A program made the position numbers and the translations under genes. The notes under the pieces were generated by a model. The model was not told the origin of the DNA. It was given only the letters and a program-made list of their open reading frames with translations, and did no database searches. This document shows positions 741 through 33,700 of a stretch of DNA of 64,000 bases, in pieces (position 1 is the stretch's first letter; the number at the start of each line of letters is the position of its first letter). The stretch is taken from positions 458,911-522,910 of the forward strand of contig NW_018480038.1 of NCBI RefSeq assembly GCF_002113885.1, read 5' to 3'. The stretch comes from Mizuhopecten yessoensis. Lineage: Eukaryota.

Positions 741-3700
741 GTAAGTATGATGGGTAGTACAGGTATATATGTGTGGAGAGGGTGCAGGAGTGCAACACTG
801 GTTAATGTTTACAGGTGCGCTGCAATGTCACTATATAAACCTCCACAGAAATAGCGTTTTGAGTCATAATATTCTATGAACCAAAATTGGTGATCGAAAT
901 TAAATAATATGTTTAAAAACCATAATGAATCTTCTCTTTGACTATGCCAAAGGTCAGGCTGTTCACACAGAATCAAGCTTGTACTAGCTCACTGTCCATG
1001 TACATGTGTGTTTCTTGCTTTGTTTGAAACGCTGCTATCATTGCCTTCCACCTCAAATAACATGACTAGAGAAAAATCTGTGTTTCCAACTTTCGCAATG
1101 AAGCTGACCAGCAGTATCATGTCTATTCCTTTACCACATCTCACCCTTCTGAACGTTTCATCTATGCTAGTATTCCCTTACCACATCTCACCCTTCTGAA
1201 CGTTTTATCTATGTTAGTATTCCTTTACCACATCTCTCCCTTCTGAACGTTTCATCTATGTTAGTATTCCCTTACCACATCTCACCCTTCTGAACGTTTC
1301 ATCTGTGTTAGTATCCCTTTACCACATCTCACCCTTCTGAACATTTCATCTATGTTAGTATTCCTTTAACACATCTCACCCTTCTGAACGTTTCATCTGT
1401 GTTAGCATTCCTTTACCACATCTCGCCCTTCTGAACGTTTCATCTATGTTAGTATTCCTTTCCCACATCTCACCCTTCTGAACGTTTTATCTATGTTAGT
1501 ATTCCTTTACCACACCACACCCTTCTGAACGTTTCATCTGTGTTAGTATTCCTTTACCACATCTCGCCCTTCTTAACGTTTCATCTGTGTTAGTATTCCT
1601 TTACCACATCTCACCCTTCTGAACGTTTCATCTATGTTAGTATTCTTTTACCACATCTCACCCTTCTGAATGTTTCATCTATGTTAGTATTCCTTTACCA
1701 CATCACCCTTCTGAACATTTCATCTGTGTTAGCAAATAACTGGATGGCGACCTGCTTTCCGCAATGAACACAATTTCTCAATATCCAAATTTAACAGACA
1801 TACCTCCATGCTGTGACGTCATTAAAACAAATTGTGTTTTAAATATAATTTTTGCAATACAAAATGGGACATGAGAAGAAAACATGATGTTTTGCAGTTG
1901 TTAGCTCTACGACCTATATTAGAAAATTTCAGTCACAGAAGAAAGTACTTGATATGGACTGTCCTATAGTCAAACATTCCACAGATTCTTGATGGGATTA
2001 TTTGATATTTTCAATGTTATAATTAGTTATTAAATTTTTGAAGACAGAAAGACATGGAAAACTGTTTTCAGGTGCGATTCATAAGCATTATATATGAATG
2101 CCCACTACTACCTTACCGAAACTTAAACATGAACCACTAACATGGTTCATTTAATATTCCTGTAATGCAGTTGGCATTCATACTGCCTGTGAACCATGTC
2201 TGAAAGCAGTTTAATGCTTAAATACATTGTCTGATGAATAGTATAGTACATAAAAAGAGCTCAGTGGAGGTCTTCCAGCCAAGATAAATTAGAATGAGCC
2301 CTGAATGATGTATGAAGTTAACCTCATTAGATAGATATAGTGGTAGTAATACTACAGATATTAAAGACATCACCTATTACCATGGTTTCTATCTCAGTGT
2401 GTGTGTGTCAATTTATTGATCAGTCCTAAGTAATTAGGGTATACAAGTTACATAGAGTATCTGGTCAATACTGCTAAGTTTTGTCTGTACAATAAGATCA
2501 GGGGTGAGGGTAACTACTAGTTACAGAGAGTACATGGTCAGTACTGCTAAGTCTTGTCTGTACAATAAGATCAGGGGGTGAGGGCAAGTACTAGTTACAT
2601 AGAGTACCTGGTCAATACTGCTAAGTGTTGTTTGTACAATAAGATCAGGGGTGAGGGTACCTACTAGTTACAGAGAGTACCTGGTCAATACTGCTAAGTG
2701 TTGTCTGTACAATAAGATCAGGGGGTGAGGGTACCTACTAGTTACAGAGAGTACCTGGTCAGTACTGTTAAGTGTTGTCTGTACAATAAGATCAGGGGGT
2801 GAGGGTAAGTACTAGTTACATAGAGTACCTGGTCAATACTGCTAAGTGTTGTTTGTACAATAAGATCAGGGGGTGAGGGTNCCAGTAATGCTAAGTCTTG
2901 TCTGTACAATAAGATCAGGGGTGAGGGTAACTACTAGTTACATAGAGTACATGGTCAGTACTGCTAAGTGTTGTCTGTGCAATAAGATCAGGGGGTGAGG
3001 GTAACTACTAGTTACAGAGAGTACCTGGTCAATACTGCTAAGTGTTGTCTGTACAGTAAGATCAGGGGGTGAGGGTACCTACTAGTTACAGAGAGTACCT
3101 GGTCAATACTGCTAAGTGTTGTTTGTACAATAAGATCAGGGGTGAGGGTACCTACTAGTTACAGAGAGTACATGGCCAGTACTGCTAAGTGTTGTCTGTA
3201 CAGTAAGATCAGGGGGTGAGGGTAACTACTAGTTACATAGAGTACCTGGCCAGTACTGCTAAGTGTTGTCTGTGCAATAAGATCAGGGGGTGAGGGTTAC
3301 TACTAGTTACAAAGAGTACCTGGTCAATACTGTTCAGTGTTGTCTGTACAATAAGATCAGGGGGTGAGGGTAACTACTAGTTACAGAGAGTACCTGGTCA
3401 ATACTGCTAAGTGTTGTCTGTACAATAAGATCAGGGGGGGAGGGTAACTACTAGTTACAGAGAGTACATGGTAAATACTGCTAAGTGTTGTCTGTACAAT
3501 AAGATCAGGTGGTGAGGGTAACTACTAGTTACAGAGAGTACATGGTCAATACTGCTAAGTGTTGTCTGTACAATAAGATCAGGGGGTGAGGTTTACTAGT
3601 ACAATTACCTGTGTGATCCTTCTCTCCTTCAATATCGACTATCAATACAGTAAGTTACTAGAGAGAAAAAAAGTTGCTATACTATATAATGGAAATATAG

Positions 3701-6700
3701 TCATTTAGAACATTAATTAATACCAGTGATGTATGATAGATCATTCTCCTTTGTCTACAGTCCAGCAGTACCTGCAGGAGGAGTTAGCCAAGGTCCAGAA
3801 AGGACAGACTAGGTCAGAATTTGGCTCCCAGACAGAGGTATCTGTGGTGCAGACAGCAGAGGTAGGATGTGACCAGGAGCTACAGGACATTGAGAGGAGG
3901 AAGGAGTCGTTACAGGGCCAGATCAAGGCCCTGGCCCAGGGGGAACTCATCCGTCGCCTGTCTTACCGCGAAACAGAACAAAGGCTTCTAGAGGAGGCGG
4001 AGGAGATCGAGGACCAATACCAGACAACGCAGGAACAGCTCAATGCTGAACTTCAGCAGCTAGAAGAGGTGGAGAAGGGTTACCGTACTGGAGATCGTAG
4101 TGAGCTTCAGGACATAACACGTGTGGTAGGTACCATTGTATATAAGGGGTGGGTGAAGTGGGGGACTACAGTCAACTACAGGACATAACATGTACGGTAC
4201 GTACCATTGTACATAAGGGGTGGGTGAAGTGGGGGACTACAGTCAACTACAGGACATAACATGTATGGTAGGTACCATTGTACATAAGGGGTGGGTGAAG
4301 TGGGGGACTACAGTCAACTACAGGACATAACATGTATGGTAGGTACCATTGTAGGTTTGTAATCAGCTGCATGAAATAACTAGTGTGTTAGGTACTATTG
4401 TATATACCAAAAAGGGTGGGGGGAAAGTGTGTAGTTAGCTAGAGGTGATATATTGTACATAGGAAGGGATGAAAGCAGAGGTATGTGGTCCGTAGTCCAC
4501 TTCACCTGTGGGAAGGGTACATTGTATATATGGAGGGGTGAAGGCAAATCTGTGGTCCGCTACAGGTCATCACCTGTGGGAATGGTACATTGTGTATATG
4601 GAGGGGTGAAGGCAGAGGTCTGTGGTCTGCTACAGGTCATCACCTGTGGGAAGGGTACATTGTTTATATGGAGGGGTGAAGGCAGAGATCTGTGGTCCGC
4701 TACAGGTCATCACCTGTGGGAAGGATACATTGTGTATATGGAGGGGTGAAGGCAGAGGTCTGTGGTCTGCTACAGGTCATCACCTGTGGGAATGGTACAT
4801 TGTATATATGGAGGGGTGAAGGCAGAGGTCTGTGGTCCGCTACAGGTCATCACCTGTGGGAATGGTACATTGTATATATGGAGGGGTGAAGGCAGAGGTC
4901 TGTGGTCCGCTACAGGGCATCATATATATCATGGTTACCATTGTACATAGAACTTATCTATCAAGCAGTGTGTCATCTCTAGGAGGCACGGCAGTCCAGT
5001 GGTAAGACGCCAGGCTCGTGACCAAAGGGTTGCGGGTTCGCGCCACGGCACGGCAATGTGTTGTATCTTTGAGCAAGATACTTTACTCCGCTTGTTCCCG
5101 TCTACTCAGCTGTAAATGAGTATGTGGTTGGGCAGTGCTAGAATTGTTGAATGCTAGCTGGTAGCGCCAAAATGGCAGCTCCGGCTGTATGCTCCCCAGG
5201 GAGTTGAGAAATGTATTGGCTGGTTGCAAAGGCCCTATAACCACGGATAATAATTTGTGAACCGCTTTGAGACGACCTACGAACTAGGTTGTGATAAAGC
5301 GGTATATAAGAACCTCCTATTATTATTAATTATATCTTCATGTGATTGTATAGAGGTACCATCAATATCAGGTGTGGATGTGTTGTGCTTTAGGGATTTA
5401 ATGATACAATGCACTGAGAGATGTATTATGTTCTGAAAGACATTTTTTTCTGTCACATTCTAGCTGTGTTGTGTAATTATTATAGTATGACTGCATAGAC
5501 AGATTATTGAATGTCTGATGATGTAATAACGTTAATATGACATGTAAAGTCAATTAACAATGTGGTTGATAGATTAGTGTTAATCCCTGATCATTATCCC
5601 CTCCAAGCAGGAGTTACCTCCCTTACCTGTCGTTTTTGTTGGAATTAACACAGCAGGTATCAGCTAATTACCAGTTAATAATGAGATGTGAGTGTGAAAG
5701 TGTATTATGTTGTAATAGCTGTCCGACTCTATGAAATATGGTTTTGTGTCAGCTCTACATACAGACCTCTGGTAAAATCAATAGCTGGTTACGACTCTGA
5801 TTGACTAGCCGAGCAGGTGCTTGTCTGGATCTGATCCAGTGTATATAATCATACATACTGATCAGGGTGCTGAACATGGAGGAGCAATAACTCATAAGTA
5901 GTGAGGTTAGGCATAGCTCAGGGTTACGTGGTTTATGTTAACTGTAGATAATTAGGCCCAAGCCATCTAACTGGAATTACAACACCCGCAGTGTTACAGC
6001 TGAAATCAGGTAAATATGGGAGGAGAGTAGCATAGAATAGTCCAGGTGTTTACAGGTAAATTAATGTTATTTTACTGGTACCATGCATGATTACTGAAGG
6101 GACATTCTGTCACAAGTGGGTGGGTTGTCAAATGCATTTTATCTAGCCTTTTATCTTCATCTATTAAGGAAGACGGTTTGAAGCCTGTGAATTACTGTTG
6201 AAGGACTGAATAACAAAGAAGGATATAGCCATTAATTTGTTTGGAAGATTTATATTAAATTATTTAGATCATCTATCATACTCTATGTTTCAATGATGCA
6301 TGAATGTTAAATATGTAATATAGCCATTTTGTTTATAATTTCATTGGTAATCATAATGTATTTGTATTAACCAGCCCTTTTTGTATTTCCTTTAGGATGA
6401 TGACTTGTCTGAGCTTGACCGACAGCAGCAGCAGCTACACTTGTACATAGAGGAGAAACAGGGGTTGATGCAGGTTGGTCTGGATGTGCCCCGCCCCCTA
6501 AGATCTGCCTGCAGTGAGGAAGTCCTAACTGACACCCAGAACTCGAGACTTGGCTTCCCCTACCGGGCGTCCAGCCTGCTTGCTCTAAAGCAGGGTAGTG
6601 AGGGGGACCTGCCAACCTTGTCTTCCAGACTGTCCCTCAACTCCTCATTAAATATCACTTCCCTGGACTCCATACCAGACAGTGTGGAAAGCATGGACAC

Positions 6701-9700
6701 ATCCCCATCACCACAGAACTCTACAAGCAACCGAGGAACGCCTACAGGTACACGGAAAAGGTCAACCAAGAGTCCAGCCTCAGACACATTGACTTCTGGG
6801 GCAAAGGAGGTCACAAGTCGACTATATACAGCTCCTCCTCCAAAATTTAAATATGAACCTAAACAGAAATCCAAGGTGGTGCCAAAAACTGATCCCGTGA
6901 GGAAGCGTGATGGTCAGGTGGGAAAAGGTGCAAGTGCTGGTGCAAGTAAAAACATTTCAAGTTTAGAAAGTAAAAAAGGAGCAGAAGATGGGAAAACAAA
7001 AACCACGTACTTACGAAAGTCAAAATCACCGTCACCAGGTAGAGCAACTGCACCATTACCAGGAGGACAGACTTCACCTTCTTCTGGAAGAGAGATCAGT
7101 CTAGGGAGTCATGCTAAACCATCACAAAAAAGGCAAAAAGCATCGCTACCTGAAAGTACAGGTAAAGGTGAAGATCATAAGGAAAAGAGGGGTGCTTGTG
7201 GGTCACCTGGTCCTCTGTCTGAAGTGACCAAACGTGCGCGACACATAAGTGACGAGTCTGGGGTGATACCACGTCTTAGACAGAGCGTGTCACAACCTAT
7301 ACTAAACAGAGGACTCCCTAGCAACAAGGTACCGCTCATTTTACCCCCAAAGCTACGACCAATAAACAGTGCTACGTCCCTGGCCAGTGTCCCAGAGGCA
7401 GTGGGTGAGGAAACTGAGGCCTTGGACCATGGCCAAGTCTCTGACTCGCCTGTTGTACGCAGGAGGAAAAAACGCCAGTTTGATGAGGATGACACCAGGA
7501 GACATTCTGAGCCTGTTGGAGAATCACTGGCGGATGCTTTTGAAAATTATACAAAGGAAATGGAGGCGAGTATAGAAATACCTTGTATATTATTGCATCA
7601 TGACTCACCTGGTGAGCGAGTGTGGGCTAGGCAGCACAGCAGTAGTGTATCAGACTCAGATGAAGTGCCGTCTAGTGACAATAATGAGGAAACTTCAAAC
7701 AGGCATAAAGGTCAGTCATTCCAAGTCATTCCTAGGACGGCTGACCTTGAGGTCACTTCATACATAGACCCGGATCAGCAGGTAGCAACTGTACAGCAGG
7801 TGGAATGCTATAATAACAATACCATGGCAGGTGATTCTACAGCCAAGGAATGTGTGAGTAACTCCAACACTGTGGGGTCCTCAGTGGATGGGCCATTACC
7901 AGGAAAACCTACCGACAACCAGTGCAATGTGAACTTAACATGTGATGTACCAACAGAAGTAACACACATGTTGGAAATTAAACCGTGTAAAGTGGATGAT
8001 AATGTGTTCAGAAATGACCTTGAATATCAACAGGAAGGAGTGGGAAGGTCAGTTGAATTAGACAGTGACTCTGGATTTTACCCAGAAAGTTCAGATAATT
8101 TTGAGAGTTCAGGAGCACATTCTTTTGCTGGTTCAATTAAAAACGTACTGGGTAGGTCAATTATTGAATCTGAACTGGATCCACAGGGATCAGTTCCACA
8201 GACAGTTCAGACTGGATTGCCTGGAGCTGTGTCTGTAGAATGTGATGCCAATGCTTCTGTGTCATACAATAAGGCTTTACCTATGTACAGTGATAAGCCA
8301 GTGTTGACGGGTACAGCAGAGGGGTCTGATATTATGGAGGGTAGTCTGACCTCCCCAGCTGATGTCAGCCTTCACCTGTCTGAGTCCCAGGACTCGGAGT
8401 CAGACTCTGGGAATTACGGGAGGAAACGAGGACATGACAGTTCCCCAGGGGATTTTCAGGAAGATATTCCAACTAAGTGTAAAAAGCAGGAAAACCGGCA
8501 TTCTGACAATGTGTATCTAGAGTGCGTAGGTGTAGAACATATGGAGGTTGTTGTACCTGAACAAGAAAATTCACAAAACATTCCACAATCTTCCACACAG
8601 AATTTGAATGCTCAATTTACTTTAAACCCAAACTTCCAGGCTAGCTCTGGATTTGTTGTCTGTGATATTTTACAAGATGCTGCACAAACAATATCAGCAG
8701 AACTTTATGGTGCTCATAGGTCATATTCGTCCGATTCTCTGGAGGATGCCGACTCTCTCGATGGATCAAGACCCAGGGCAACCATAGAACAGGAACTGAC
8801 CGATTCTCTGGAGGACTCTGATGTTGACAATAAAGAACAAAGGTCAAAACATAGGAAAAAACACAGTGATACAGGATCTCTACAAGGGGAACAACAAACT
8901 GACACAGGATCTCTACAAGGGGAACAACAAACTGTCACAGGATCCCTACAAGGGGAACAACAAACTGTCACAGGATCTCTACAGGGGGAACAACAAACTG
9001 TCACAGGATCTCTACGGGAGGAACAACAAACTGTCACAGGATCTCTACAGGGGGAACAACAAACTGTCACAGGATCTCTACAAGGGGAACAACAAACTGT
9101 CACAGGATATCAACAAGGGGAACAACAAACTGTCACAGGACCTCTACAAGGGGAACAACAAACTGTCACAGGATCTCTACAAGGGGAACAACAAACTGAT
9201 ACAGGATCTCTACAAGGGGAACAACAAACTGTCACAGGATCTTTACAAGGGGAACAACAAACTGATACAGGATCTTTGCAAGGGGAACAACAAACTGATA
9301 CAGGATCTTTACAAGGGGAACAACAAACTGACACAGGATCTTTCCAAGGGGAACAACAAACTGACACAGGATCTTTACAATGGGAACAACAAAGTGACAT
9401 AGGATCTCTACAAGGGGAACAACAAACTGACACAGGATCTCTACAAGGGGAACAACAAACTGACACAGGATCTCAACAAGGGGAACAACAAACTGACACA
9501 GGATCTCTACAAAGAGCAGATGAATCACAAGGATGCAATCAGTCTAAAGAGAAGCATTCCCAGACTGAAAATAATGAAAACTTTTCAAATGAATCTGATA
9601 CATGTTTGAGTAACACAGCGATTGAAATTCAGAGTAGCACCCAGATGTCTACCAGGAAAGAACATGAGCATTCAGATTTCGAATTGTGTGAATCAGTTAC

Positions 9701-12700
9701 AACTACTGACATAGAAAAAGAGATGTTAAATGTTGATAAAAAACCAAACTTATCCCAAAGCGATGTAGACATTTTTTCAACCCCTGTATCTGATAACTTG
9801 GCAGAGGATAAAGCAGTGACATTAACCCAAAGTGATGTTAACATCTGCTCGACACTTGGTACTGCTAGTACTGGAGACAATACCACAACACCTAGTACTG
9901 TGAGTAATTGAGACGATACCACAACACTTAGTACTTGAGACAATGCCACAACACCTAGTACTGCTAGTACTGGAGACAATGCCACAACACCTAGTACTGC
10001 TAGTACTGGAGGCAATACCACAACACCTAGTACTGGGAGTAATGGAGACGATACCACAACGCCTAGTACTGCTAGTACTGGAGGCAATACCACAACACCT
10101 AGTACGGTGAGTAATGGAGACGATACCACAATACTTAGTACTGCTAGTACTGGTGACAATACCACAACACCTAGTACTGCTAGTACTGGAGGCAATACCA
10201 CAACACCTAGTACTGGGAGTAATGGAGACGATACCACAACGCCTAGTACTGCTAGTACTGGTGACAATACCACAACACCTAGTCCTGTGAGTAATGGAGA
10301 TGATACCACAACACTTAGTACTGCTAGCACTGGAGACAATACCACACTTTGTACCACAAGGAATGGAGACGATACCACAATACTTAGTACTGCTAGTACT
10401 GGTGACAATACCACAACACCTAGTACGGTGAGTAATGGATACGATACCACAACACTTAGTACCGCTAGTACTGGAGACAATACCAAACTTTGTACCACAA
10501 GTAATGGAGACGATACCACAATACTTAGTACTGCTAGTACTGGTGACAATACCACAACACCTAGTCCTGTGAGTAATGGAGATGATACCACAACACTTAG
10601 TACTTGAGACAATGCCACAACACCTAGTACTGCTAGTACTGGAGGCAATACCACAACACCTAGTACTGAGAGTAATGGAGACGATACCACAATACTTAGT
10701 ACTGCTAGTACTGGTGACAATACCACAACACCTAGTCCTGTGAGTAATGGAGATGATACCACAACACTTAGTACTGCTAGTACTGGAGACAATACCACAC
10801 TTTGTACCACAAGTAATGGAGACGATACCACAATACCTAGTACTGCCAGTAATACCGACGATGCTACTCATGTTGAAGCTTCAATAAGTACTGATGATGT
10901 CCACTTTAACAGTAAAGCTGCTGAAGCTGTGGAGATATTAGTTTGTCAGGAGCCCTGTCACACTCTGAACTCTGTTTGCCCAAGTGAGGTTGAATCAGCT
11001 AATACTAAAATCTCTGCTGGCTGCCCTGGTGAGCTGGACTCTCATCTCAATGAAGCCTCTGTGTTGGTCTGCTCTGGTGAGCTGGACTCTCGTCTCAATG
11101 AAGCCACTGTGTTGGTCTGCCCTGGTGAGCTGGACCCTCGTGTCAATGAAGCCTCTGTGTTGGTCTGCCCTTGTGAGCTGGACTCCTCTAGAGTGGACAT
11201 CTCCTCCCCTGTCGTAACCTCATTAAATACTGATACAATTGTGCCTGTACACTCCCAGACAGACACCTCTGTGGGAGATTCTGCTATAATAAAGGACTTG
11301 TGTCAGGTTTCACCTGAAGAGTCCTTTTCTTTGAACAATCTTTCCAAAGCTGAAGCTGTTAAAGAGATCAATGTATCTCCAGATCAGATGGTAAGTGTGT
11401 CTGATAGCTTTGTGTTTAAGCCCAACACAGCTGTAAATCCGTTGGAGGTGAAATCTGACGATATTTCTCAACATGTCAACCATTCTAGAGGAGAGGTTTC
11501 CATCGGCGTCGATGGTCAGCAGATGGAACTAGCCCAGGAATATTTGTCTGCAACCGGTGTGTGTGATACAAACACATCTCGCGGTCAGGTGATCAGTGTG
11601 ACTGAAGCCACACCCACCCAACACTACCCAGACACCAACCAAAGTCAGGAGGATAAACTTGTGGTCAAGGACCCTTTGACCTTCACACCAATTAAATGTA
11701 ACAAGGAGGATTCAAGCAGTCAAACAAATCTATCCTCAGATATGAACTTTAAACCAATCAACAATGCTGTAGAGGAGTTACATGGTCAGGTGCCTGACCA
11801 ACCCTCCACACGAAGTCTTGGCATAGTGACCACGCCCGATCGCCTGACCCAGGGAATGGAGGAAGAGGAGAATGTGGGTGGAGCCAGTGACTGTTCCCAC
11901 GACTCCATCCAGGATCTACAGGAACAGCTCCAGCAGCTTGAAGAATTTCCAGGTCAAAAGTAAGTCTGCTCAATTAAAGATCATTCTCAAATTTACCAAA
12001 AGTAAGTCTGCGGAGTTGAAGTCCATTTTTAAATTTATCAAAAGTAAGTCTGCTCAGTTAAAGTTCATAATCAAAAAAATCAAAAGTAAGACAGCTCAAT
12101 TTAAGTCTATTCTCAATGGATAAAAGTAAATCTTGAAGTTATATTCCTTTCACAAATTAAGTCTTCAAACAACTTTAAAGTTCCAGGGTTACACTCGCTC
12201 TTATTCTCTGCACCCCTAGAGTATGTCATGTTGAAATTGATAGTGCCACCTTGTGGGTGATACAAGTCGACTACTTTGATCTTGTTATGTATATCAAAAG
12301 GATCACACAGCAGCACAATATCAGAAAAATGACCTGCGTTGAAGTTGGGTGTTGCTGTTCTGTAATTTTCAAAGGACAGGTATCAGCCTATGGATTGGTA
12401 ACTTCTTTTCTTACATGAAATCAATCAAATAGTTAACCAAGTGCCTTTGATTTTGTAATGACGATTCTAGGGGTGCAAAGTATGTAAGTGAACATAACCC
12501 CTAGAAGGTCAAGGATGGTCTTCAGGTCATTGGCCATTCTTTAATCCAAAGTAAGTGTGCTCAGTTATAGCCATTTCTTAAATTAACCAGAAGTTAGTCT
12601 TCAAATTACAGTCTGTTTTCAGATTAACTAAATGTAAGTGTGCTCAGTTATAGCCATTTCTCAAATTAATCAGTAGTTATAATCCATGATATCACATTTA

Positions 12701-15700
12701 AAAAGCCTGCTCTGCAGTCACAGTTCATTCTTGAATTGCTCAAATTGGTAACATTTAATTTGAATTTTGAACTTAAATAGCATATATTGTATTGAAATTG
12801 TGTGCAAATCAGGGACTGAACTCTGAAATTGTGCAGCAGACACATTATCTTAAACTGGCTATTTCAGCAGTGCGAGTGGACAATACAATAATGACTCTTG
12901 GCTGACTTTGTACAGAGTTTTTTAAATGACATAAGATAGAGATTAGTACTGCCTTTAGAAAGCTGGTTCAGAGTAGAGGTGTTGAGAAGTTAACACCCTC
13001 TTAATCCGGCTGACTTTAAACTCCAGTAATGTTGTTTACAATCCCACACAGATTTGGGGTACAGTCCTGGGTCAAAGTAATAACTATATAGGTCTGAACA
13101 AAGAATGTATGTGCCTTTTTAATGCTGGTGGGTAGTAATGGTAGACCACTGTGCTATTTATATAAATCTATTATAAGTGTTTCTTATGTAATTGATTGGT
13201 CTGGTCAGTGTTTTGAAACAGTAGAACCTTATCTGACCCGAAAATGAATTCATTCAAAAGTTTGCCTCATCTTTGTAGCATAAACTACTACATGAAGTTT
13301 TTCATACATGTGTCACATTTCACACTGAATCTTCAAACAAGGCCACATTTTATATTCTCAAATTAGATCGCATTTTATATTCTCAAATTAGGTCACATTT
13401 TATTACCTCAAATTAGTTCACATATTTCCATTCTTCAAATATCATAAGTTTTCTTGCAGTGATTTCTTTAGAGTATAATATATGATTTGTTCTTCCTTGT
13501 AAATATTTATACCCTCTGATTTAAAGTTCAATCAGGTGGAATCAGTCTCTGCCTCTCCCTCCGTCTACCAGTAAACTATGTTTGGCCAGGCTGCTGCAGT
13601 CCTGCATAGATCACAATAAAAGAAATGTATATTTTTTGGTATGCAATATAGTTGTTAACTATGGGAATTGGCTGTAATTGACAATGTTATACCCACAACT
13701 TTGATAAGGAGGGGAAGGGTAATACAGTTATCCCTCTGTCAGTTAATCCATCAACAGATAGCTATAGTATAATGCTCACGTACAATATCCCTCCTAAAAT
13801 CTTTATAATTACATCATAGTATGGTAAAGTTCTACACCTGATTAGATTTTAATGGTCAACACTGAAGATCGAAGGGTCAAAGATCACACTTAATTTACTA
13901 GTAATACATTTTTCATTCAATTGATAATTTTTGCAGAGAAATGACCTTTTTCATCAAAAAGGGGGAAAAATGACAATGCATACTAAACTGTTAAGCTGAT
14001 TTCAATCAAACTTTGTATGCTGTCCATATGTTTCGGTCTGAAATGTTATTGTGCAATGGCAGATATTAATTTCAACATTTGTTGGCTGTTCAGGAACATC
14101 TAAGTATGCTATAATATAGGATTCTGAATCCAAGTCTGTATATATGTATGTATGTAAATAAATATGTATATATAACAGAGATGATGGACTGGTATCGCAG
14201 CATTAAATATTTTAGAAAGTCCATCTAATCTGGCTGCTCGTTTCATTGCACTGAAATATCCATTCTGTCACCTTTCACTTCCTTTAGTACCGATTGTTTG
14301 GTCTGTTGGACATAACAGGTATTTGGGTTTTAACAATGGGATGTCCTATAAGTTGACTCATAGGAATACACAGAGCTTGTTCTGTGAGAGCTTATTCTTC
14401 ACATCCACGTGTGAAAAGCTTGTCCCTTGAACCAGAGATTAAATCTGTATCTTTGGGGTGTATACAGGTTTTAGTACAAGAAAGTTGGCAGTCAATTGAT
14501 AAAGTAGTTTTGATGATAAGATAGCAGTTGTTTGTGTGTTCTGACCTTTATTTTTGCTGAGTATTAGGTAGGAAATTTTACACAAAACTCATGCTATAAC
14601 AGTTCTGGAAAGTGTTCAAAATATTGACATAATGAATTGAAATTCAGTAACTAATTAATAATCATCTGCAGGTAATGGACATTTAGCCCTTTAAATACTG
14701 TAATAGGTGTAATAATTAATGACGAATTTTCAAAGTCACTGTTTCCCTGCGAGTCAAATTACGATCACCAGTAGTGTGTGGGATTTGATGTGGTGCCAAT
14801 TCCAACGATACATTGTTAGACAGTAATGGGATTGAGGGGTTTTGTTGACACAGAGATGGGTTTACCAAGGTATGGTCCCAGAGGTGTCCTATACACTTCA
14901 TACATAAATTTATGAAGGAGGCATAATTCAATGTAAGATATCTCATTTAAAGAGTACAAAAAGTTCCATGATTCTGGCTATAACACATTATGTGATAAAT
15001 TAATTGAATATGAGTGAAAAGCTAAATTCTTAGAATTTTGTTGATTTTACAAGTCAGAAGTGAGGGTAAAAAGTCAGGGAAACTAACGTGCAGAATAGGA
15101 CAACTTTATAAGGTAGTCCCTAGTTGATGCCAGGTTTGTAATTTATGGCCGATGTTTATGGTTAGGTATTGTTGATAAGTAGTAAACTGTTGTTTACATA
15201 CATAACAAGGGTGTGACCTAAAGAAAACAGCTGGTAATAAACAAGTAAAGTATCCAACCACTGTCCAGTGTCATTCCTCCTACAGTGATTGGTGGTGAGA
15301 CCGCATTAGATAATCAACAATGAGATATATATGTTTCCTGTTCAAACTGTATAATTTGTTTTTAAATAAATCCCGGCTGATATGATGTTCACATTCTCTA
15401 TAGACCGTTGTTTTATGTTTTAAATGACTTTTGTGGTAGAAGGACTAATTATAACTTCCACTAATAAGGTAAGGGGGTATATTATATATAGTCAATCCAA
15501 ATGCAGATGCTTGCCATTTGCTATTTTGAAATTTTCTGAATAGTCATATTTGGCAAAGTTTTCAAAATGAGCTTATATATACTAAACTTTATGAATATGG
15601 GGAGCAATTTATAGTGACCTTGTCTTCCTGTTCATATCCTAATTTGTACGAGATATTGTAATATAGTATTTACCAGGTAGAGGTCACCTGGCTCCATCAT

Positions 15701-18700
15701 TTCAATCTACCTGTTCCATGATAGATAAAACACACCCTACCTTAACATATACCCTATTTATACCTTACCGATAGATCCACACATGTAAGCTATTATTAAT
15801 AATATATATGTACCTGTAATATAAACTACATGTATGCGCCACACTATACAGTGACAGATCGACCAAAGACATGATAACCACTAAAGCTGCAGCGGTCCAT
15901 TGTACCACACCAATGGATGTTGAATGGGTCTCGCATTAGCCTGGGTAGTTTGAGATCATGTGTTATCGGTGACATTGGATATTGATTTTTGAATTATTCC
16001 CCATGTTTGGCTGTAGTTTTGAAAACACAAGTAGTATTACATAACCCTGATGTTTTCACATGATGTGATTTGAATCGGGAAACAAGATGGAACCATTGGG
16101 GCCTGAACAGGAATACAGTTGGTTGAATATCAGACTTGTGTCGTTAAATGTATTGGATTGCAGTAACACAACCACACAGATCAAACAGATACTGGGCACC
16201 CAATACCTTTACTTGGGTAATGAATCATGAGCTTTCTGTAGCATTATGTTTTCACTATGAAACATGGATGTTTTAAGATTGAATGACATTTAATGTTACT
16301 CTGGGGTCTGCTTCTGTATTTCTGTAAACAAGATATGCTGATACAAATACATGCCAGAACATTGCTGATCCCACACTGTTGAGTAACAGAGCGTTGTGTG
16401 TGACCAATGATGTATAAGTCCATCTCTCATTCCAGGGGTGCTGGACCTAATGCTAACCCTTCATTGTCATCGTCTCGGAGGGCCACACGCCACCGTGCCA
16501 TGATCCGACAGAAACGTCGAGGTGTGGAGGAATCCGATGACTTTAGCCCAGAGTCTGGTGACTCCATCGGTTCTGGTATGTATGACATTTTCATTTTGGG
16601 AAGTAAGGGACTGAACGAAAGTTATTGGCCTCCATCTTGGATGCTTTTGAGAGACATTGATGCATTGGTGTAAATATTTCTGTGGTATCTTTATAGTAAC
16701 TAATCTATATTTTGATACCAGTAAAACATATTATGATTTCGTTGTTGTGCAGAATTGTTTAAATGGGAAGATAAACTTGAGTATTTGTTTACGTAAACAC
16801 CTCTTTGAGATTCCAGCCTATTGATTAGTCAACATATATATATAACCACACAAACAATACCTCCCTTATGGTAACTCTAGGTGCTTTTAGTAAAAAATTC
16901 TGCTGATTTTCTGCAGTGTTATCATGATACTACATTGTGCAATTAATCAGTATTGAGGAATTCCTTTTTTTTCAACAGAACTATATAAAACTTTGTACTA
17001 CTTCAGCTTGGACTGTATAATTGTGATCATTCCTATTGACTCAGTTGAAGAGATTAGATATATATCTCAAACTTACTGATCTTCCCTAGTGTAAAACTGT
17101 AATTGCATGTTTAACCTTTATAACCTGGGTATTAACAGGTACCCTGAAATAAAGGTTCTATCTGTCAATGTCTCTGTGTTTAAAGATCACCATTCAGACT
17201 TTTCTCTGCAATACAGAGTGAATTTGTTCTCCTTAGATTGTACCCTTAGATTTTTTACATTATTGGCAGGGTGCCAAGAATTGATTCGGTGCCGTCTTCA
17301 TGATAGACGGAATTGGTCGTGTTGTGGCTTTGGTCAGTAAATAAAACATTGAAGCTCACATCAGATATATACTACACAGTGATGTCTCTGATGTGTCACG
17401 TAATGGACACAGTGGCCATACAAAACATGTCTGTTATGGTGTTTGTGATGCAGTATTAGCAGAGAATTGATCGCATGGTTGTCTTCAGTATCGGAGGGTT
17501 ATCAGACCTGGTGTGACATTTGTAGGTACTATCTAGTACTTTATGTTGTGTGTCCAGTGTTTGGGGGACATTTCCCAGTGCTTTACAAAGTGCAGTTATG
17601 TTTGACTGGCATGAATATTGTATATTGATACGGTGTCACTTGGTAGGTTTAAAAGACTTGGATTATATTACCTGCGGCTCGGGTTAACAGGCAGTCGGCC
17701 AATTGGAGCTGTACTAGCCACACACTTTGTACATAGTTTTTGATTTCTGTGGATTTAAATTTCTTTCATTCTATATAATTAAGCGTGATTACAGGGCCGG
17801 ATTTGCTTGACTGGACATCCATTATAAGTGATAATAATCACAAATCAAGCGATGACGACCAAGTCTTCACATGCTGTCAACCACATGAATAACATAGTGC
17901 ATAAAATTGGTTCGCAGTGTGTTTGGTGGTGGAGGCATACCTAAACAGTAGTTGTAAGGTTTATCCTGTGTCAATAACTAAACAACAGTGGTTGTGTCCT
18001 CAGTGTATTATCAGCGGGCCAGACCTATAGTTTCTCAAGTGTAATGTCAGGGTTTGGACAAAGTATCTTAAGAGTAATGTCATCGCTGGGACAGAATTCT
18101 TGTGGAGTCCGTGTAACATCAGTATAGGGATGGAATTCTGGTTGCCTCAGTGTAATAATAGTGTCGGGATGGAATTCTAGTATCCTAGTTGTAAACACCA
18201 TGTGTCAGTAAAGAACATGTGTAGTTACTGGGCACTAAACAAGTTTATTAATGGATCTTAATACCAGGAAAACCATGAAGGACCTAAAAATTGTCAACTG
18301 ATCAATGTGAAACATTCAAGACGTCATAAAGGTAAAAGAAATATGATAGTCAAGGTTAGGCTGTCAAAAGTATTACCATTATTTCACAGCTGTATCCAGG
18401 ATATGGTTGAGGTTGTGTTGCAGTTCATTGATTTTAACTTGTGACCATGTTTTCATTGTTGACAATACACTTAATCTCTATAAATTCTTGCGTTTCTTTA
18501 AGATTGGAATTTTGCTAATGTAAATAATAAAGGATTTTGCTGACGAAACCATTCTACCTGTATACAAAGCCTTAATTCCCAGTATAACACTGTTCCCACT
18601 GTCAAATGTGATACACACACAATATCTACTAGGACTGTCTACGTTGTACCCAGATATAGTACTTCGCTCCTGGCCATGCTGTATGTTTCCTGTATACAAA

Positions 18701-24700: not shown

Positions 24701-27700
24701 TGTGAATCATAAGTCTCAAGGTAATAGCTATGGATTAATTGACTTTAGGACACATACCTGGTGAGCTATTTGGTTGTATACATGTAAACCTCCTTATTGA
24801 GTACGCATATCTTGGATATTGGTTAGGACAGACATATTTGATAGTTGTTGAAACTGTGACAAACTATTTTGTGTGATAGTTAAGAAATTAATATTGTTTC
24901 CTTTCAGTTATATAAGATACCTTTGTAGTTTTCAATGACATGTTAAGTTTTAGTTTCAAGTGACTTAAGATGTCAGGTTAGTTTTTACAGTGATCTTCTA
25001 AGTGAATGAATGACCAACTAGGTTTCTTTTTACTTTCAGGGAATGTGTCTAAGCCATCGTCCAGACCGGACTCGGCATCTAAACGCCGACGTCGGATAGT
25101 CAAATCAAAGTCAGACCGTCGCTCTAATTTGAAAGCTCCTAGTTCTGAGGATTATGTTAACTCTGAGAGTGACGATGTTTGCTCTGATGATTCTCACTTA
25201 GCCAACGAGTCTGGAGATTTGAAGGATGTGCAGCCAGACATCTCTGATGAAAGTGAACCTTCTGTGACATACAGTGACTTTGCCCAACAGTTGTCGACTG
25301 CTCTTGATGAGCAGAAGGAGAGTATAGCTGAACATGACAGTGTTAGTCAAAGAACTCAGACATGTGATTGTGCAGAAAACAGTGAAGAATTATCAGAAAA
25401 TAGGATTGTAACTAATTTAAAACCTGAACAACCTGACAGTGAAGAAGAATTCAAAATGGATGGTCATCATATGAATGGAGTTTCAAATCATGGGGATGAC
25501 ATGAACAAGGGTGCTATCCCCAAGAAAAGTAAGCGATTCAAACAAAGGAACAGCAATGGGTCTAGCACCAGTGATTTAGATACTGATATGCGACGCTCAT
25601 CAAGAACGCCATCAGAAACGCGTGACATGGAACAGCAGACAGATGTGAGTTGGTTGGAATTTCCAGACATTTCTCCATCTCAAACTCGACGAAAATCGCC
25701 TGTATTGCATATCTCTCCTCTGAGTGTGTGGAACTCTGGGGATAGAGGAGTAAGGACTTCTAAAGGCCCGCACGGGTCTGGTGGTGTTAACGTCAGTATG
25801 GACAGTAGGCACATCAAAAAGACAAAGAGAACAAAACCAGTTAGTTTACAGTTCACTACACCTGATGTTTGGTCAGCAGATACCTGGGTAGAGAATTACG
25901 CGTCCAGTGGAAAACTTGATGCAGATATTTCATCTGATTCGGATGATGATCATGCATATGTTATGGAAACTGAAGTGTTCTCACCACAATCACCAACAGC
26001 TTGTGATAAGTTTTTTGATGATGGAGATACATCTGATACTAAAGAAGATTCCAATTCTGTGAAATATTATGTGACAATTAATGAGGAAAATACCAACATT
26101 AGCTACAATGTTGACAGAACTGAATACAAAACTTATTCCCTGAGAAGTCAGATTCAACCAAATGAACAAACAATGAGCATTCCAGAAAGTATTAATATAA
26201 ACTTGACAGCAACAGATACACATACTTCAGAGAGCCGCCACACGTCCTCTAACTCGCAGCGAGTTTATCTCAACAACTCTGATCAAACATCCTCATCTCC
26301 AGAGCAAAATATTGTTGTTTCGGAGAGAAGTTTTCGAACAGTACATGAAGCATCAAGAGATGAAGACGATTTCGTAGAGAGACATTTTGAAGAAGAAGCA
26401 TCAGCATCTTACTTAGAGCTTTGTCCTGGGACGAGTACACCTCATCCGCCTAACATTTTCACAGAAACAGGAGACATAAATAAAAACGACATTCTTTCTC
26501 CTCGTGAGTCTGAAACCACCTCCGATTATGGGACAATGATAATGGACAACAGGCGTGACTTTACATCCTTTACCCTTGACTCAGGAGATGAGGAGGGTTC
26601 TCTGGCTAGTGGTTACAAATCTTACACTGACAACCAGGATAGCAGTCCTCTGGACGATAAAGTGTTTGCTCTCCCTAGTGATCAGTCAGATTTACTGCTG
26701 GCAGAAATGGGAAGTGTTCCTGAAGTGAACAGCGAGGACGTGGATTCAATATCACAAAATGGCCAACGTTTGTGTTCTTCTGAGCATATCTCCAGGCGGA
26801 ATGTTGTAGCAGGATCACAGCATCTCCCTTGTGAACCAGAAATGGTTTCAAATGTACTCACTAGTGAACAGATTGACGCAAATTCTGTTTCCGACGACAG
26901 TTCAGATATAGAAAATAGCCAGTTTGTTGAAGCTGAAAATGTTCCACATTCCACAAATATTGCTCAACAAGTTATAGGTGCTCTTGCACGGATGTCAGCC
27001 CTGGCTGGGGTTAATAAGGAGGACAGTGAGGACCTATCAGTGTCATTAGACCGACTTCAGGGACCAGAGAGTGTAAGTTCAGACTCGTCAATCTACAAAA
27101 CTCCTCAGCAATCACCAAGAGATGAAGAGGAAGGAGATACCGCTGCAATTGAGAACGTGGAAATTCCTGATCAGCCTCAGTCACCTCAACTCTCTAAATG
27201 TATGAAAAATAAGGAAGCATTAAATCCACCCCTCCAATCCCAATCAAAAGCTGTTGCAGAAGATAAGACGGTATCAGTCACAACTGACCCTCAATCTATT
27301 CCCTGTGCAAGGAGAAAGACGGTTGATGACAGTAGTGTTAGGGAAGATCTCAAACGGGAACTACAGCAGAAATTAGCTCGACTTCAAAAGCATGTACGGA
27401 GTCTAAGTGACTCCGCCATTAGTTCTGACTATACTGATGGTGACTCAACCTCTGTATCTCCACGAGGGAGCAGATTGTATGAGTCTGACAAGACCTTGAG
27501 AGGAGGTCTTTTCGTAGACCAAACCGATTCCAGGTATCCAGAGGACATCCGTGTCATGGCGACTCAGACAAGGACCCAGTTTGATCCTGCAGCTTCTGGA
27601 CAGCCCTTCTCATCAACCGTCCACAGACTCTTAGAGATTGATAACAAAACACCCAAAAAATCCCCTCTTAAAGACTCTGGAAATGTTTTTGACGATTCTG

Positions 27701-30700
27701 ACCTAGGTGAACAAGTAGAAGATACAATCGTTCCTGAAAGAGTTGTAAAAGAGGAGTTGTGTAAGTTTGTTCCAATAGTTAAAGACGATGGGGATAGCAA
27801 ATGCGATGATCTTATGAACGCAAGTGCCATTGCCGACTCTAGGTCACTTTCGCCTGGTGAGCTTATGTTAAGTGCATCATGTTCATCAGGAGACATTTTT
27901 GAAAGTGTAGGATCTGGCTCTTCAGACCTAGAGGAAGTGTATAGAATTAATACTAGTGGGACTATGCATGATCAGTGGAATGATCGAGACGATGGAATTG
28001 TCCCCAGGTCGTTACCTGGCACGCAACGGTCGGTCAAGAAGGAGAAATCTCCCTCCATGTCGGACATTGCGTCTCCTCGGTTTGACAGAGACTTAAAAAG
28101 GTCAATGTCAGAGGCTAACGTTGACGATTTCGAGGAAATAACAACGTCTTCAGAGAGCTCTAATGACAGTATTGTGTTTGTATTCATGGGCCAGTCGCAC
28201 ACTACGGAAAGCATGGAAAAACTTCAAAACGAGTACAATCCATTACCGTTCGGAAACGATTCAGAACCTGTATATCATCCCTCAAATTGGACTTCTGAAG
28301 AATCAACTTCCAGTCAACCGCAGCTCAATTCGGAGGGCACGATTTCTAAGATTGAGGAACAGACATCAGATTATGACCTTGTGAAATCCGGAGAAAATTG
28401 CTCTATAAGTGAAAATCAAATTACATTGGAATCTAAGAAGGAGCTGAAGCCCTCCATACATATAAGTGAAAATCAAATTACATTGGAATCTAAGGAGGAG
28501 CTGAGGCCCGCTGTAAAGTCAAGTCCAGACCATACCGGCGAGTGTGGTTATAAGAACTACGACGACGATGACAACGAGCCACTGAGGCACAGGTTTGGTA
28601 TCGACGAGGCCGTTCTCCCAATTCCTGAGAGATCTGTGTCCTCCGATAACATTCCAAAACAGACCATGTCTAATCTGACTGTTCACCGCTCACGATCTAC
28701 AGATCTTCTGGAGGTAAATCCTGTGGAGAACCCCAATGATCCCAGTAACAACGAGGGCATATTTCCTCCAAATGTTGACTACGACTTTTGGGATGATTCT
28801 CATGGCTACCACGGCGACGTAGTCGTCATCGAGGAATACTACTCTGATGATAGCGACACGAAAAAGAGCTCTGAACATGCTCTGGACAAATCACAAGATC
28901 GATTTATTGACGAGGAACATATTGCAACAGAGGAGATACCTTATTCTGAACTGTCTCCAACACATCAAGACGGAAATCGAAGGGTCTCCTCAGAAGCTAT
29001 TGACTACAATGGTAACATGCATGGTACTGGAATGCTAGATCAGGAAGAGCAGTATGTGGGCGAGCTTTACACCTTACCCACCACAGGACCCGCTGACACA
29101 TCTAGAGGCCAAGAGTCTGGTCGAATCCTCGATCCTGCTGGACAACTCGCATCAGATAATAGTTTACAGACACAATTAACAGACACTGGCACTCAAACAG
29201 AGGTTGTAGAGTGTTCAGCCAAAAGTCAAGAGGAATCACACGTGTTACCAGCTCTTGCCTCCCCGTACCGAGCACAAAGCATGGGTGATATTAACCCAGC
29301 GGACAGTTCCATTACTCTCACACTTCCAGAAGGCACAGAGAACTGGGAAAACTTGTCCCATATGGTGATTGAATCGACGACTTTGATTAATAACATCAAC
29401 CAAAAAATTGCTGGAGTCAATACAACTCCTTGTTCTTCTAAGGAAATGCTTAATTCACACTCCATCACAACCGGATCCCGTCCCGCCCGATTGCAGGCTA
29501 ACGTTAACATGGAGTCGCAGGACGATACCACTCAGACAACAAGGCCATTGACTGATCTACATGACCTTGCAATACAGACTGATGACGAATGGATGCTATA
29601 TGATAGGGAAGATTCTCCAGACAATAGTAACGATTCTACCCAGACAGACACCGACATCACTAGACCAAGGGAGCTGTCGGAAACCGAAACAAATGATATA
29701 ATTTCACTTCCGGTGGAGCTTCCTGTTGACTATGACAGAGTTTTCCCTCCAGAACCCTCGAAAGAGATGTCTAGTCAAACGTCACCAGACACCACTGTAG
29801 ATACAATTGATACTTCTATGCAAACTGATGAATTTGAGAAAGTACTTACAAGACTTAGTCATGCTCTGAAGAACGATGATAGCCAACCGGAAGAGATTGA
29901 AGAGGAGATCAAATCATCTTACGTTGATGGAGTGAATGCACAGAAAACACTGAAATTATCGTCTGGGCATGTAACATCTCGTGTCCAAGACCAAGCTGTT
30001 ACCGAATACAACAAACAGGAGCATCATCTGCGAAAACACAACTCAAAACAGGATCAGACTCAAACTGTCATCATTGAGAGACAGAGTGTCATAGAAACAG
30101 AGGCAAATGTTCCTGACATGGATGTGACTAATGCTGAAATGGAAGCTCTTAAAGCTGAGCATGTTAAGATGATGGAATCTCTCAAGAAAGCAGCTGAAGG
30201 CAGAAAGATAAGAACACATGATTTAAAAGCTAGATTGGAGAAACAAACACAACTGGAGAAGGGGCCTGTTAGTGATCGTTATACTGACGAGTCCAATTCA
30301 GATACTAGGCATGAAAACCGGAATATGACGTCGTGGCATGAAACACACCTATCCTCCGATATCAGCTTAAACTACGACAGTAGTAGTAGAGGTGTCCAGA
30401 AGGATGTTACATTGGAACAAATCAAAACATCAGTTCATACCGAGAAGGAAACAGAACATGTTTGTGACGAATCTGGTGACTTGGACTCCATCTTCAAAGA
30501 TAGCCATCAATATTTGGGTAGCAATGACAGTTTGGAGAATATTGATGACCTCCTGGTTGCTAATAGTTGGGTAAAAGGTAAATCTAGATCATCTTCTGAA
30601 CCTGTATCAACAAAATCTGTAAAAGGAAGAAAACACGAAGAAACTTCAGTTGTGTGTGAATCTCCGACTGAGATTATTGAGGACCTGGTTTCACCTGTTT

Positions 30701-33700
30701 GTAAATCAAATCAGCAAGCAACGTCGCCATCAGTCGGAGCTGAAGGAGTCCCACACAATACCACCGAGGTGACCAGACTCGACTCTTTGAGCAATTTAAC
30801 CTCTGAAGGAACACTGCTTGGGGAAGAGGTTTCTCGTTTTCTTAATGATGATAACGATGGTAGATCGCCAATTTTCAAAGATGACTCCCGGTTCGGAGCA
30901 GAAAACAGAGCACTTCTTACTCGGAATAGGGCGACCAGTGAACCTGTTGATGATGAAATAGGTGACCGAGAAGGATCGCCACAACTACAGACTCCTCCAA
31001 ACTCGCCCGTTGCATTGAGCAACGGTGAATCAAGAAAACCGCAATACAAGAAACCACAACCGTACCGAAGATCTCCCGAAATTCAGCCTAACTATTTGGC
31101 CACACTGCGAAAGCAACCCCCTATTACAAAACAAACAGAGACGAGTGGACAAATCAGTACAGGGGTGGAGGTGTCTGTCGACAGTTCTGATGACTTCACT
31201 CAGACTGATCTGCAGTCACTTAAACTCGATCTGAGTGAGTTTAAATTCGATAGTAGCACACATTCCGAGACACGGACGGTCCGTAGTCAAAATAATCCGT
31301 CGATAAAATCCAAGCTATCAATACTACAAAAGGAAAGGGTAGAGATCATAGAACTGCTATCGATGAACTATCTGCCTGCCAGCTTAACAGTGGAACTGTT
31401 AGAGGCCAAACTTAACTACTGCATCGGGCAGACGGACACACTGCTGAAAACGCTGGAGGAAACTTGGGATAGAGCAGACTTCAATGTTAAAGAGATACAC
31501 GATCATCACCACACTAACATTACCAGAGAGTATGTGACTAATTATCGCTTTGACCTGCAGAAATCAAAAAGGGATATTCAGATATGCAAGGAGAAAATAA
31601 ATTGCGCAGTACAACCGGGAGTCGGCCGTGGTAGAACTTTGACAAGGAATAAAGACATTGCAAAGTGGAAACGCTTAGAGGAAATTGAGGCATTTAAGAC
31701 TGAGAGATTTATGGAACAACACAACTATGAACGAGCAAGAAGCATTAGTCCTCTGAAGAAAATGTCGTCTTTTGAGAATGAGAGATATTCACGCAGTGTA
31801 AGTCCGTCTTCAACGGAAACCTCTCCTCGACTGATGACAGCGAAGCAACACAGAACACACCTCGTAGATTTGAGGCGCTCCCTGGTGGAAGTGACAGAAC
31901 GAGATGAACATGCATACAGAGCAAGCAGATCGTGTTCGCCACAGCTTAGTCATTATGATGACACGGACAGAATACATAGTCCCCGGAGTTCCTCCTATAA
32001 CTGCTCACCACAAACGTCGCCTGTACACAACCGGTACTCGCCACATATCAGCCCAGAACATCATTACATGCAACCAACATCAATATCACCACGGGCATCA
32101 CCAGAGCGTCATAATTCTCCTTGTATATCTCCAGAGCACCAGCTTTACAGAACGGACTATGGCAGTACCAACAGTCTATCCGTACCAGACCAGCACACAC
32201 TGAACGTGTCCCCGAGAAGCTATTCACATAGTCCCGCTAGGACGTACACACAGAGCAGGCCCGACGTGTACAATGGATCCTACCTGACCCCTCGTGTCAC
32301 TAGTGCTTCGCCACAGCCAACTGCTGCGTCCACGCCCCATCGACCCCGTTCTTCTCTGGAGGGTTCAAGAGATCGAGAGTTGCGAGGACATGATCAGCTG
32401 TATGCCCTTCAGGAGACAAAGGACCTATTTAGGGACATGCAGGAAGCAAGGATGCGGAACCAACAGGAGATTACTCGGGCACAGAACACACTGCTACAAA
32501 GTACCAGGAACTACAGGTATGTAGCACATGTATTATCGCACGACGTACATGGTATATCCAAAAGTAAGTAGCTACATTTGTTTATCATTAGTTTTATATG
32601 TAAATCCCACTAGTTAATTAATAGTATCAACCTTAGGTCCCTAGGTTTTCTCAAACGCAACCTAAAAATAAACTCACCACATATAAAAGAACATGCATAC
32701 AAAGCACTAGTTAGGCCCAAACTTGAATACTGCTCTCCCATTTGGGATCCACACAACACAAACCAAATTAAACAAATAGAAAAAACACAACGAAGAGCAG
32801 CACGCTACGTACAAAACAGATACCACAACACTAGTTCCGTAACAGACATGATCCACACACTTCAATGGCCAACACTACAAACACGACGCTTATACACTAG
32901 AATTATCCTTTTTTACAAAATTATACACAGAATCGTAGCTTTAAACCCAACACATATACTCACACCTGTAGACCCCCGCACCAGACAGGTACACCCGTAC
33001 GCATACAAATACATATCTGCTACAAAGGACACCTACAAATACTCATTCTTCCCACACACAGTAACACAATGGAATCTCCTCCCCTTAGCAGCAGTCCAAT
33101 GCACAACACTAGAGGACTTCAAGGCACACTTACCCTACACANNNNNNNNNNNNNNNNNNNNNNNNNNNNNNNNNNNNNNNNNNNNNNNNNNNNNNNNNNN
33201 NNNNNNNNNNNNNNNNNNNNNNNNNNNNNNCCCCCCCCCCCCCCCCCCCAAATGATCTTTTTTACAAGTTATTTTATATAGTAGGATGAACATGAGTGAC
33301 ATATTTTAAGTTAAATCATACCCTTATTTAATCGGTGGCAGCAGGAATTCGCTTTTGATTGATGCTATAATAACAACATCTTAAATTGTTTGTTTTTTAG
33401 TAACATGAGATCGAGGACGAGCTCCAATGCCAGTTCTCGCCGGTCGTACAGTTCCTACCGAGACTACGCCCGTGACCTGATAGAGGGCAGCCAGCGATCC
33501 ATACACGGTATGGTTAGTGGTAGTTATGAACTGTATGACACCACAAACCATGGTAGGGGAACTGGAGTGATCTCCCCTCCATCATCCGTTGTGTCCGACC
33601 TGGAATCGTTACCAGATTCTATTCTTAGTGAACAATACGCCAGCAATGCTACAACCTCTCATCTGAACACGGATCCTTCCTTCATTAGAACCAGACCAAT

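Follow-up and report, generated by a model that had tools for sequence, protein, structure and literature searches.

Three in-frame stop codons in a coding minisatellite of a giant scallop exon: a candidate nonsense haplotype of a kinesin-3-type gene

How can a gene that otherwise looks alive carry three in-frame stop codons in the middle of a giant internal exon? The question is raised by a window of 64,000 nucleotides of the Yesso scallop Mizuhopecten yessoensis (the whole stretch of DNA analysed here, contig NW_018480038.1, positions 458,911 to 522,910), in which all the features described below lie on the forward (+) strand and are numbered from the first letter of the window. The exon (6396-11959, 5,564 nt) belongs to a disordered tail, is collinear with one protein stretch in three orthologs, starts in phase 0 and ends 2 nt into a codon. 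Its frame (codon starts divisible by 3) is open from end to end save for TGA at 9909-9911 (TGA1), 9936-9938 (TGA2) and 10605-10607 (TGA3), and every one of these frame and stop coordinates, already given in an earlier note made from the sequence alone, holds. That note had proposed that the segment 9900-10949 is spliced out as an exitron. We tentatively prefer another of its suggestions, namely that the reference haplotype is a nonsense allele, which would have been created and spread by the dynamics of a repeat array, and we assign to this reading a probability of about 0.45.

The gene, which is conserved across scallops, is predicted, from its domains and its orthologs, to encode a kinesin-3-type motor protein of roughly 5,400 residues. 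About 4,000 of these would form a disordered tail, and the C-terminal part is well conserved. The exons for the kinesin motor and for an FHA domain lie further upstream on this contig (contig positions 418911-448910), the N-terminal motor being followed by FHA as in the kinesin-3 family; the orthologs carry PF00225, PF16796, PF16183 and PF00498, and among motors of solved structure KIF13B, KIF1A and KIF14 come closest. In the window, two coiled-coil exons precede the giant exon, one at 520-740 (an exact match to the deposited protein OWF35730.1, with junctions placed against the Pecten maximus ortholog) and one at 3761-4125, which was placed by OWF35730.1 and the P. maximus ortholog and ends on a codon boundary. 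The giant exon is followed by a small exon (16436-16575) whose first base is the third of the codon interrupted at 11959, by a second giant exon of about 2,490 open codons (25040-32516, 78% identity to P. maximus) and by the last coding exon with the stop codon (33401-33761). Downstream of the three TGAs, about 450 codons are thus open in the giant exon and about 2,650 in the later exons (16436-16575, 25040-32516 and 33401-33758), the latter figure agreeing with the one first read from the sequence; together they make some 3,100 codons.

The deposited model of this gene is wrong. OWF35730.1 ([quoted passage not shown], 3,954 aa) matches the window residue for residue and is the only M. yessoensis model found to cover the giant exon; it misses the motor and dodges the stops by a 2,334-nt intron (9033-11366, 778 codons), which we rejected as a prediction artefact, its sites being non-consensus with scores of -3.8 and -9.4 bits. 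That an intron had to be invented in order to avoid the stops counts in favour of a nonsense allele, and the junction 9900-10949 is used by no annotated model, which counts against its being spliced. A full-length M. yessoensis model with a clean junction was not returned by the search that found three full-length orthologs, which speaks weakly against a well-supported junction. A word search with 10851-11957 gave no match, so no transcript-derived M. yessoensis protein fragment was recovered for that part. The same search with 6396-9908 also gave no matches, being swamped by low-complexity words, and an exhaustive search found fragments in that length range. The searches took the exons one at a time, joins between them serving only to count stops.

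The three orthologs are intact and each is one single protein of 4,893 to 5,060 aa: that of Ylistrum balloti (XP_060080344.1, 4,893 aa) was found by an exhaustive protein search, and those of Pecten maximus (XP_033735090.1, 5,060 aa) and Argopecten irradians (XP_069119081.1, 4,940 aa) by a word search with the Y. balloti protein. Lineage-unique amino-acid changes were counted per species at the alignment columns where the other species agree. A. irradians was left out of the main count because its upstream model has an aberrant stretch; the unique share of the Yesso scallop is then 47 versus 98 upstream of the stops (32%) and 122 versus 230 downstream (35%; Fisher p 0.68), and the same upstream/downstream test with all three other scallops gives p 0.054. 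We therefore rejected an old or processed pseudogene, since no stop lies outside the array and lineage-unique changes are not in excess downstream. As the part behind the stops evolves no faster than the part in front of them in the M. yessoensis lineage, the impression of a living gene conveyed by the earlier note is borne out, and the stops must be recent, not real, or bypassed. The same observation, with every other found exon open, favours a nonsense allele over old decay in so far as recent or bypassed stops are what it calls for.

All three stops stand inside a 36-bp array. Tandem Repeats Finder places this array at 9852-10851 (28.5 copies, 76% matches), with a period-27 array at 9865-9963 within it, and detects two further arrays in the same giant exon, one of 33 bp at 8860-9512 (19.8 copies, 93% matches) and one of 48 bp at 11021-11185 (3.4 copies). 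The 36-bp array is a coding minisatellite (VNTR) made of head-to-tail in-frame units that encode TPSTASTGDNTT-like peptides, and its copy number differs between relatives. Cut into units over 9852-10850, it yields 28 Thr/Ser-rich units of three types, A (TPSTASTGDNTT), B (TPSTVSNGDDTT) and C (TLCTTSNGDDTT). Five of the 28 are off-length (27, 27, 33, 33 and 33 nt), all of them multiples of 3, so that the frame is kept; no frameshifting indel occurs among the 28 units, a point that weighs against intronisation of the array. Each TGA takes the place of the GGA (Gly) codon of its unit, as the unit-by-unit cut confirms for a pattern that had been noticed beforehand. This shared position holds no extra information: a single substitution can produce a stop from GGA but from no other codon of the unit. 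Among the variants of the array, 6 are synonymous and 11 non-synonymous (expected shares 27% and 72%), which gives no clear signal of constraint.

Comparison with the other scallops indicates that the array is an expansion, in agreement with the earlier reading of the repeat. The roughly 330 Thr/Ser-rich residues that it encodes are absent from all three orthologs, in which the sequence "...S(D/E)V(N/S)(I/F)CS..." leads directly to the sequence ahead of the CPGELDS repeats. The segment 10848-11030 is homologous to residues 1988-2041 of the P. maximus protein (31% identity, E 3e-6 for the pair), so the ancestral coding sequence restarts at about 10850, that is, 100 nt before the acceptor at 10949 on which the exitron proposal depends. 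No 36-bp units were found elsewhere in the 988-Mb assembly of 82,659 contigs, nor was a second haplotype contig or a further copy of the array, the region being single-copy. The lineage-specific 36-bp array is not the only variable one: the 33-bp array is common to the other scallops with different copy numbers, the 48-bp array has 3.4 copies here versus roughly 20-30 in the orthologs, and thus all three arrays of the exon differ among the four scallops.

TGA1 is a GGA-to-TGA change in a type B unit, and the 31-mers across it are all unique in the window. TGA2 lies in a short unit of 27 nt (type A minus 9 nt) that is present twice, at 9924 and at 10593, inside an identical block of 61 nt (9915-9975 and 10584-10644), the surrounding blocks of 171 nt being 90% alike; TGA3 is TGA2 copied together with its unit, and the 31-mers across TGA2 and TGA3 occur twice in the window. 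The proposal that one stop was duplicated by repeat copying is thereby backed; the block looks as if a short segment had recently been copied, or as if the assembler had passed twice through one graph node. The short unit and its neighbour have a GCC variant in common, and for this reason the short unit belongs to the genealogy of the array. TGA1 and TGA2 are spaced by exactly 27 nt, in a 27-nt register in which 24 of 27 bases are identical, and the two may share one common origin.

So many stops in the array are not expected from its codon usage. Of the possible changes from the unit consensus, 0.8% make a stop (weighted by ts:tv), and in the actual array the share is 0.9% (unweighted) versus 4.5% in the other analysed coding sequence. 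Of all single changes that would create a stop in the analysed exons, only 1.6% fall in the array. With three stops in the array, none elsewhere and 1.6% of the chances, a process specific to the array is indicated. The array contains 19 distinct variants, two of which are distinct GGA-to-TGA changes, against 0.15 expected under neutrality (P about 0.01 if they are independent); with a single origin of the stop variant, the probability is about 0.14. Two stop variants are therefore unexpected even neutrally unless they have one origin, a difficulty for the nonsense allele that we prefer.

The segment 9900-10949 does have the outline of an exitron. It lies inside a coding exon, begins with GT at 9900 in phase 0, ends with AG at 10948-10949 and measures 1050 nt, a multiple of 3, and its excision would leave 1504 codons without a stop; these elements, which apart from the codon count are described in the earlier note, were recovered exactly, and the phase-0 length that clears all stops speaks for intronisation. 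The retained form is not stop-free, since it contains the three in-frame TGAs. The donor-like GTGAGT (9900-9905) is one of six copies in the array, the others being at 10107, 10287, 10428, 10569 and 10740, all in phase 0, and the motif simply consists of the Val-Ser codons of type B units. We mapped 21 real introns of the gene (18 via the ortholog and 3 via the M. yessoensis protein) and built small weight matrices from them, and with 21 sites the scores that follow are rough. The donor at 9900 (ACT|GTGAGT) reaches 1.5 bits, versus 1.8-12.4 bits (leave-one-out) for the 21 real donors, and is thus below all of them; G at +3 is found in none of the 21, and a score as good is reached by 82 of the 320 GTs of the exon.

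The acceptor-like site (10930-10949, 6.1 bits) fares better in score, being above 5 of the 21 real acceptors and fourth among the 433 AGs of the exon, which favours intronisation. Its pyrimidine fraction is 0.43, versus 0.50-1.0 in the 21 real acceptors, there are five AGs in the 40 nt upstream, versus 0-3, and the closest upstream AG is at 8 nt, versus at least 16 nt; use of this nearer AG would shift the frame. The site moreover falls within the stretch whose P. maximus homologue is coding. No fewer than 6,219 in-frame, stop-free GT-AG pairs span the three stops, and in a sliding control, 58 of 311 targets of the same size (about 19%) obtained an equal or better in-frame pair within 400 nt on each side, so the pair 9900/10949 is no better than chance. 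As a constitutive intron comparable to the 21 introns of the gene, the segment differs in donor, pyrimidine fraction and AG spacing. Overall, the exitron at 9900-10949 is disfavoured on these sequence grounds: the donor falls below all 21 real ones, the acceptor has a poor tract and no AG-exclusion zone, and it lies in ancestral coding sequence. What stands of the interpretation given in the earlier note is the expansion, the copying of a stop and the living gene; what is not supported is the exitron, and the null allele, which had been listed there as an alternative, becomes the preferred reading.

Splicing might nevertheless bypass the stops in another way, with the array or 9900-10949 removed from most transcripts and the retained form serving as a truncated or decay-targeted isoform; the stops would then do no harm and could build up. 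We hold any such bypass to be unlikely, and its exact placement at 9900-10949 to be less likely than that. The reading stays alive for one reason, which is that the stops concentrate in the array while about 3,100 downstream codons are open and constrained, as expected from relaxed selection specific to the array, and it is the only feature that does so; the same concentration counts against the nonsense allele, since relaxed selection on a spliced-out array would fit it equally well. Exitrons tend to have weak splice sites and to code for disordered sequence, which also suits the candidate. In the published intronisation model, coding segments of 3n length are expected to gain premature stops (PMC9612004). 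On the other side, intronisation makes up about 2% of within-exon deletions in eight vertebrate species (PMC12457776), and the donor, the acceptor and the control described above all weigh against it. In its most specific form, a young minisatellite would be turning into an intron, with GTGAGT codons recruited as donors, a cryptic ancestral AG as acceptor and the array absent from productive mRNA; this form we consider rather improbable, a little more so than splicing bypass at large.

An error of assembly or consensus, in which the true codon is GGA at some or all of the sites or the 61-nt block is single in the genome and was threaded twice, appears to us less probable again. The stops are indeed confined to the 1 kb of the gene that is hardest to assemble, the repeated 31-mers across TGA2 and TGA3 would allow a graph assembler to reuse a node, the M. 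yessoensis reference assembly was presumably made from short reads, and the three changes are all G to T directly following a T. Against this, a random substitution in the array gives a stop in only about 0.9% of cases, so that the errors would have to be very many, and the other variants of the array are orderly and common to several copies. No ordinary unit has T at the stop position, so that a mixing of units cannot yield TGA, and the short unit has a variant in common with its neighbour. There is, finally, no assembly gap (N) in or near the array, the closest ones being at 2881 and 33142.

The stops could also be fixed and be decoded or tolerated in another way, by selenocysteine, by readthrough, by A-to-I editing of UGA to UGG, or by a truncated motor accompanied by a separately started C-terminal protein, which we regard as very improbable. 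The intact downstream frame fits such a reading, and UGA is the leakiest stop codon. Three successive stops would multiply low readthrough rates, however, and the replaced residue is an ordinary linker Gly; nothing points to an internal start, and the orthologs are single proteins. No Rfam family, SECIS included, attains its gathering score in any part of the window, the 3' UTR being covered; this answers the SECIS search that the earlier note had suggested, and selenocysteine decoding was rejected for want of that element. No inverted repeat pairing with the array was found within 5000-17000, which leaves no obvious editing substrate and makes A-to-I editing unlikely on present sequence. Skipping of the whole exon, another alternative of the note, is excluded by phase, because an exon that starts in phase 0 and ends 2 nt into a codon shifts the frame when skipped.

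The nonsense haplotype would have arisen as follows. The 36-bp array would have expanded in place, between the ancestral residues "...NICST" and "NT..." of the disordered tail, where it would ordinarily be translated as a Thr/Ser/Gly-rich linker. On the reference haplotype, the GGA of one unit would have become TGA, and slippage, short-tract conversion or unequal exchange would have carried this TGA to two more places. Translation of such an allele would stop at 9909, after about 2,050 of roughly 5,400 residues and with at least 3 exon junctions still to follow, so that its mRNA would probably be lost to nonsense-mediated decay and the animal would live on its other allele. Three points are our inference: the stops exist in the DNA and are no assembly error, they are rare or heterozygous, and the mRNA undergoes decay. 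Several observations point to this reading: the events look recent and driven by the array (the 61-nt block, the 27-nt register and the shared GCC variant), three stops fall in an array that holds 1.6% of the stop-creating changes, and no credible bypass was found, given the weak splice sites, the frame-shifting skip and the lack of a SECIS and of an inverted repeat. Bivalves, moreover, are highly heterozygous and bear heavy loads of recessive loss-of-function alleles. The reading has its cost, as at least 3 mutational steps on one null haplotype need time or a very unstable array.

Whatever the fate of the stops, the locus shows how fast coding minisatellites, here three separate ones within a single disordered tail, grow and shrink between relatives. 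If they belong to a segregating null allele or to an assembly flaw, the finding is an ordinary one that is useful for annotation. Were the array spliced out, it would be a metazoan, repeat-born case of intronisation with gain of premature stops, and a rare view of the birth of an intron in a giant exon.

Among known systems, the array is closest in form to coding VNTRs in the long exons of disordered regions, with which it shares units that are multiples of 3, a giant exon and a copy number that varies widely between relatives. In internal exons, tandem repeats account for about half of the indels that became fixed, chiefly where exons are long and regions disordered, and the differences between the scallop arrays fit the exons so described (PMC12457776). 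The present case differs from coding VNTRs in that the reference copy holds three in-frame stops, one of which was copied with its unit. Exitrons, reportedly described by Marquez and colleagues in 2015 as introns inside protein-coding exons whose retained form has no stop codon, resemble the candidate 9900-10949 in their position within a coding exon, their GT-AG ends, their length in multiples of 3, their weak sites and their disordered sequence; the candidate has three stops and sites no better than chance, and it is known here from sequence alone. The Catania-Lynch intronisation model describes, as here, a coding segment with a length in multiples of 3 and with premature stops, the removal of which restores the frame, and in that model the spliced form would gain an advantage from decay of the retained one (PMC9612004). 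It was developed, however, for Paramecium genes, with segments that are short and close to the 5' end (PMC9612004), whereas the segment considered here is 1 kb long and lies mid-exon in a metazoan giant exon, and its candidate sites are without the features of the real introns of the gene. The remaining likeness is with introns born from tandem arrays in human, which Zhuo and colleagues are said to have reported in 2007: in both cases tandem repetition yields several in-phase copies of a donor-like motif, but there the unit copies a real exon-intron junction, while here GTGAGT is two codons of an exonic unit.

The deposited M. yessoensis protein model of the kinesin-3-like gene, OWF35730.1 (KP79_PYT10774), has a length of 3,954 aa and leaves out 778 codons through an intron placed at window positions 9033-11366, the sites of which are non-consensus. 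This intron is invented and the first exon of the model is spurious. The exons encoding the kinesin motor and the FHA domain, which lie upstream on the same contig, are also missing from OWF35730.1, and the true product of the gene should comprise approximately 5,400 residues. In this upstream part, no exon corresponding to ortholog residues about 357-391 was found in L004 (positions 428,911-438,910 of the contig), between the exons located at 3620-3799 and 5748-5825 of this locus. L004 has an N content of 988, so that an exon may be hidden by an assembly gap.

The top-scoring donor-like site of the giant exon (ATG/GTAAGT, about 11 bits, phase 0) is located at window position 11391, within sequence that OWF35730.1 counts as coding, and appears to be an unused decoy. 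The same exon encloses two further coding minisatellites that are also carried by other scallops, with very unlike copy numbers between species. The 33-bp array (window 8860-9512) is present in about 20 copies in M. yessoensis, whereas P. maximus has about 17 copies and Y. balloti about 8. The 48-bp CPGELDS array (window 11021-11185) numbers 3.4 copies in M. yessoensis against roughly 20-30 in the three orthologs. In the A. irradians ortholog (XP_069119081.1), roughly residues 1500-1600 form a stretch rich in both 'GLDPGTQSG' and 'RDTVWSWW', without counterpart in the other scallops, which may be a repeat translated in a shifted frame in the A. irradians model; this stretch raised the count of changes unique to A. 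irradians in the upstream comparison.

The last intron of the kinesin-3-like gene contains, at window 32614-33252, an open frame that is similar to the C-terminal portion of LINE-type reverse transcriptases and is broken by an N run (assembly gap, 33142-33230). Exons of a second gene, with RNI-type leucine-rich repeats, are located at about 56000-59600 on the plus strand (for example 58620-58769 and 59346-59588).

Finally, in many intronic or intergenic minisatellites, more than one reading frame stays open over a long distance, as in those at 4453-5005, 38911-40084, 49145-50122 and 61678-62306 in the window, at 3657-5426 and 7349-8824 in locus L005, and at 4769-5707 and 6878-7765 in locus L002. 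Because arrays of this kind are very abundant in the M. yessoensis genome, an open frame within a repeat is no evidence of coding.
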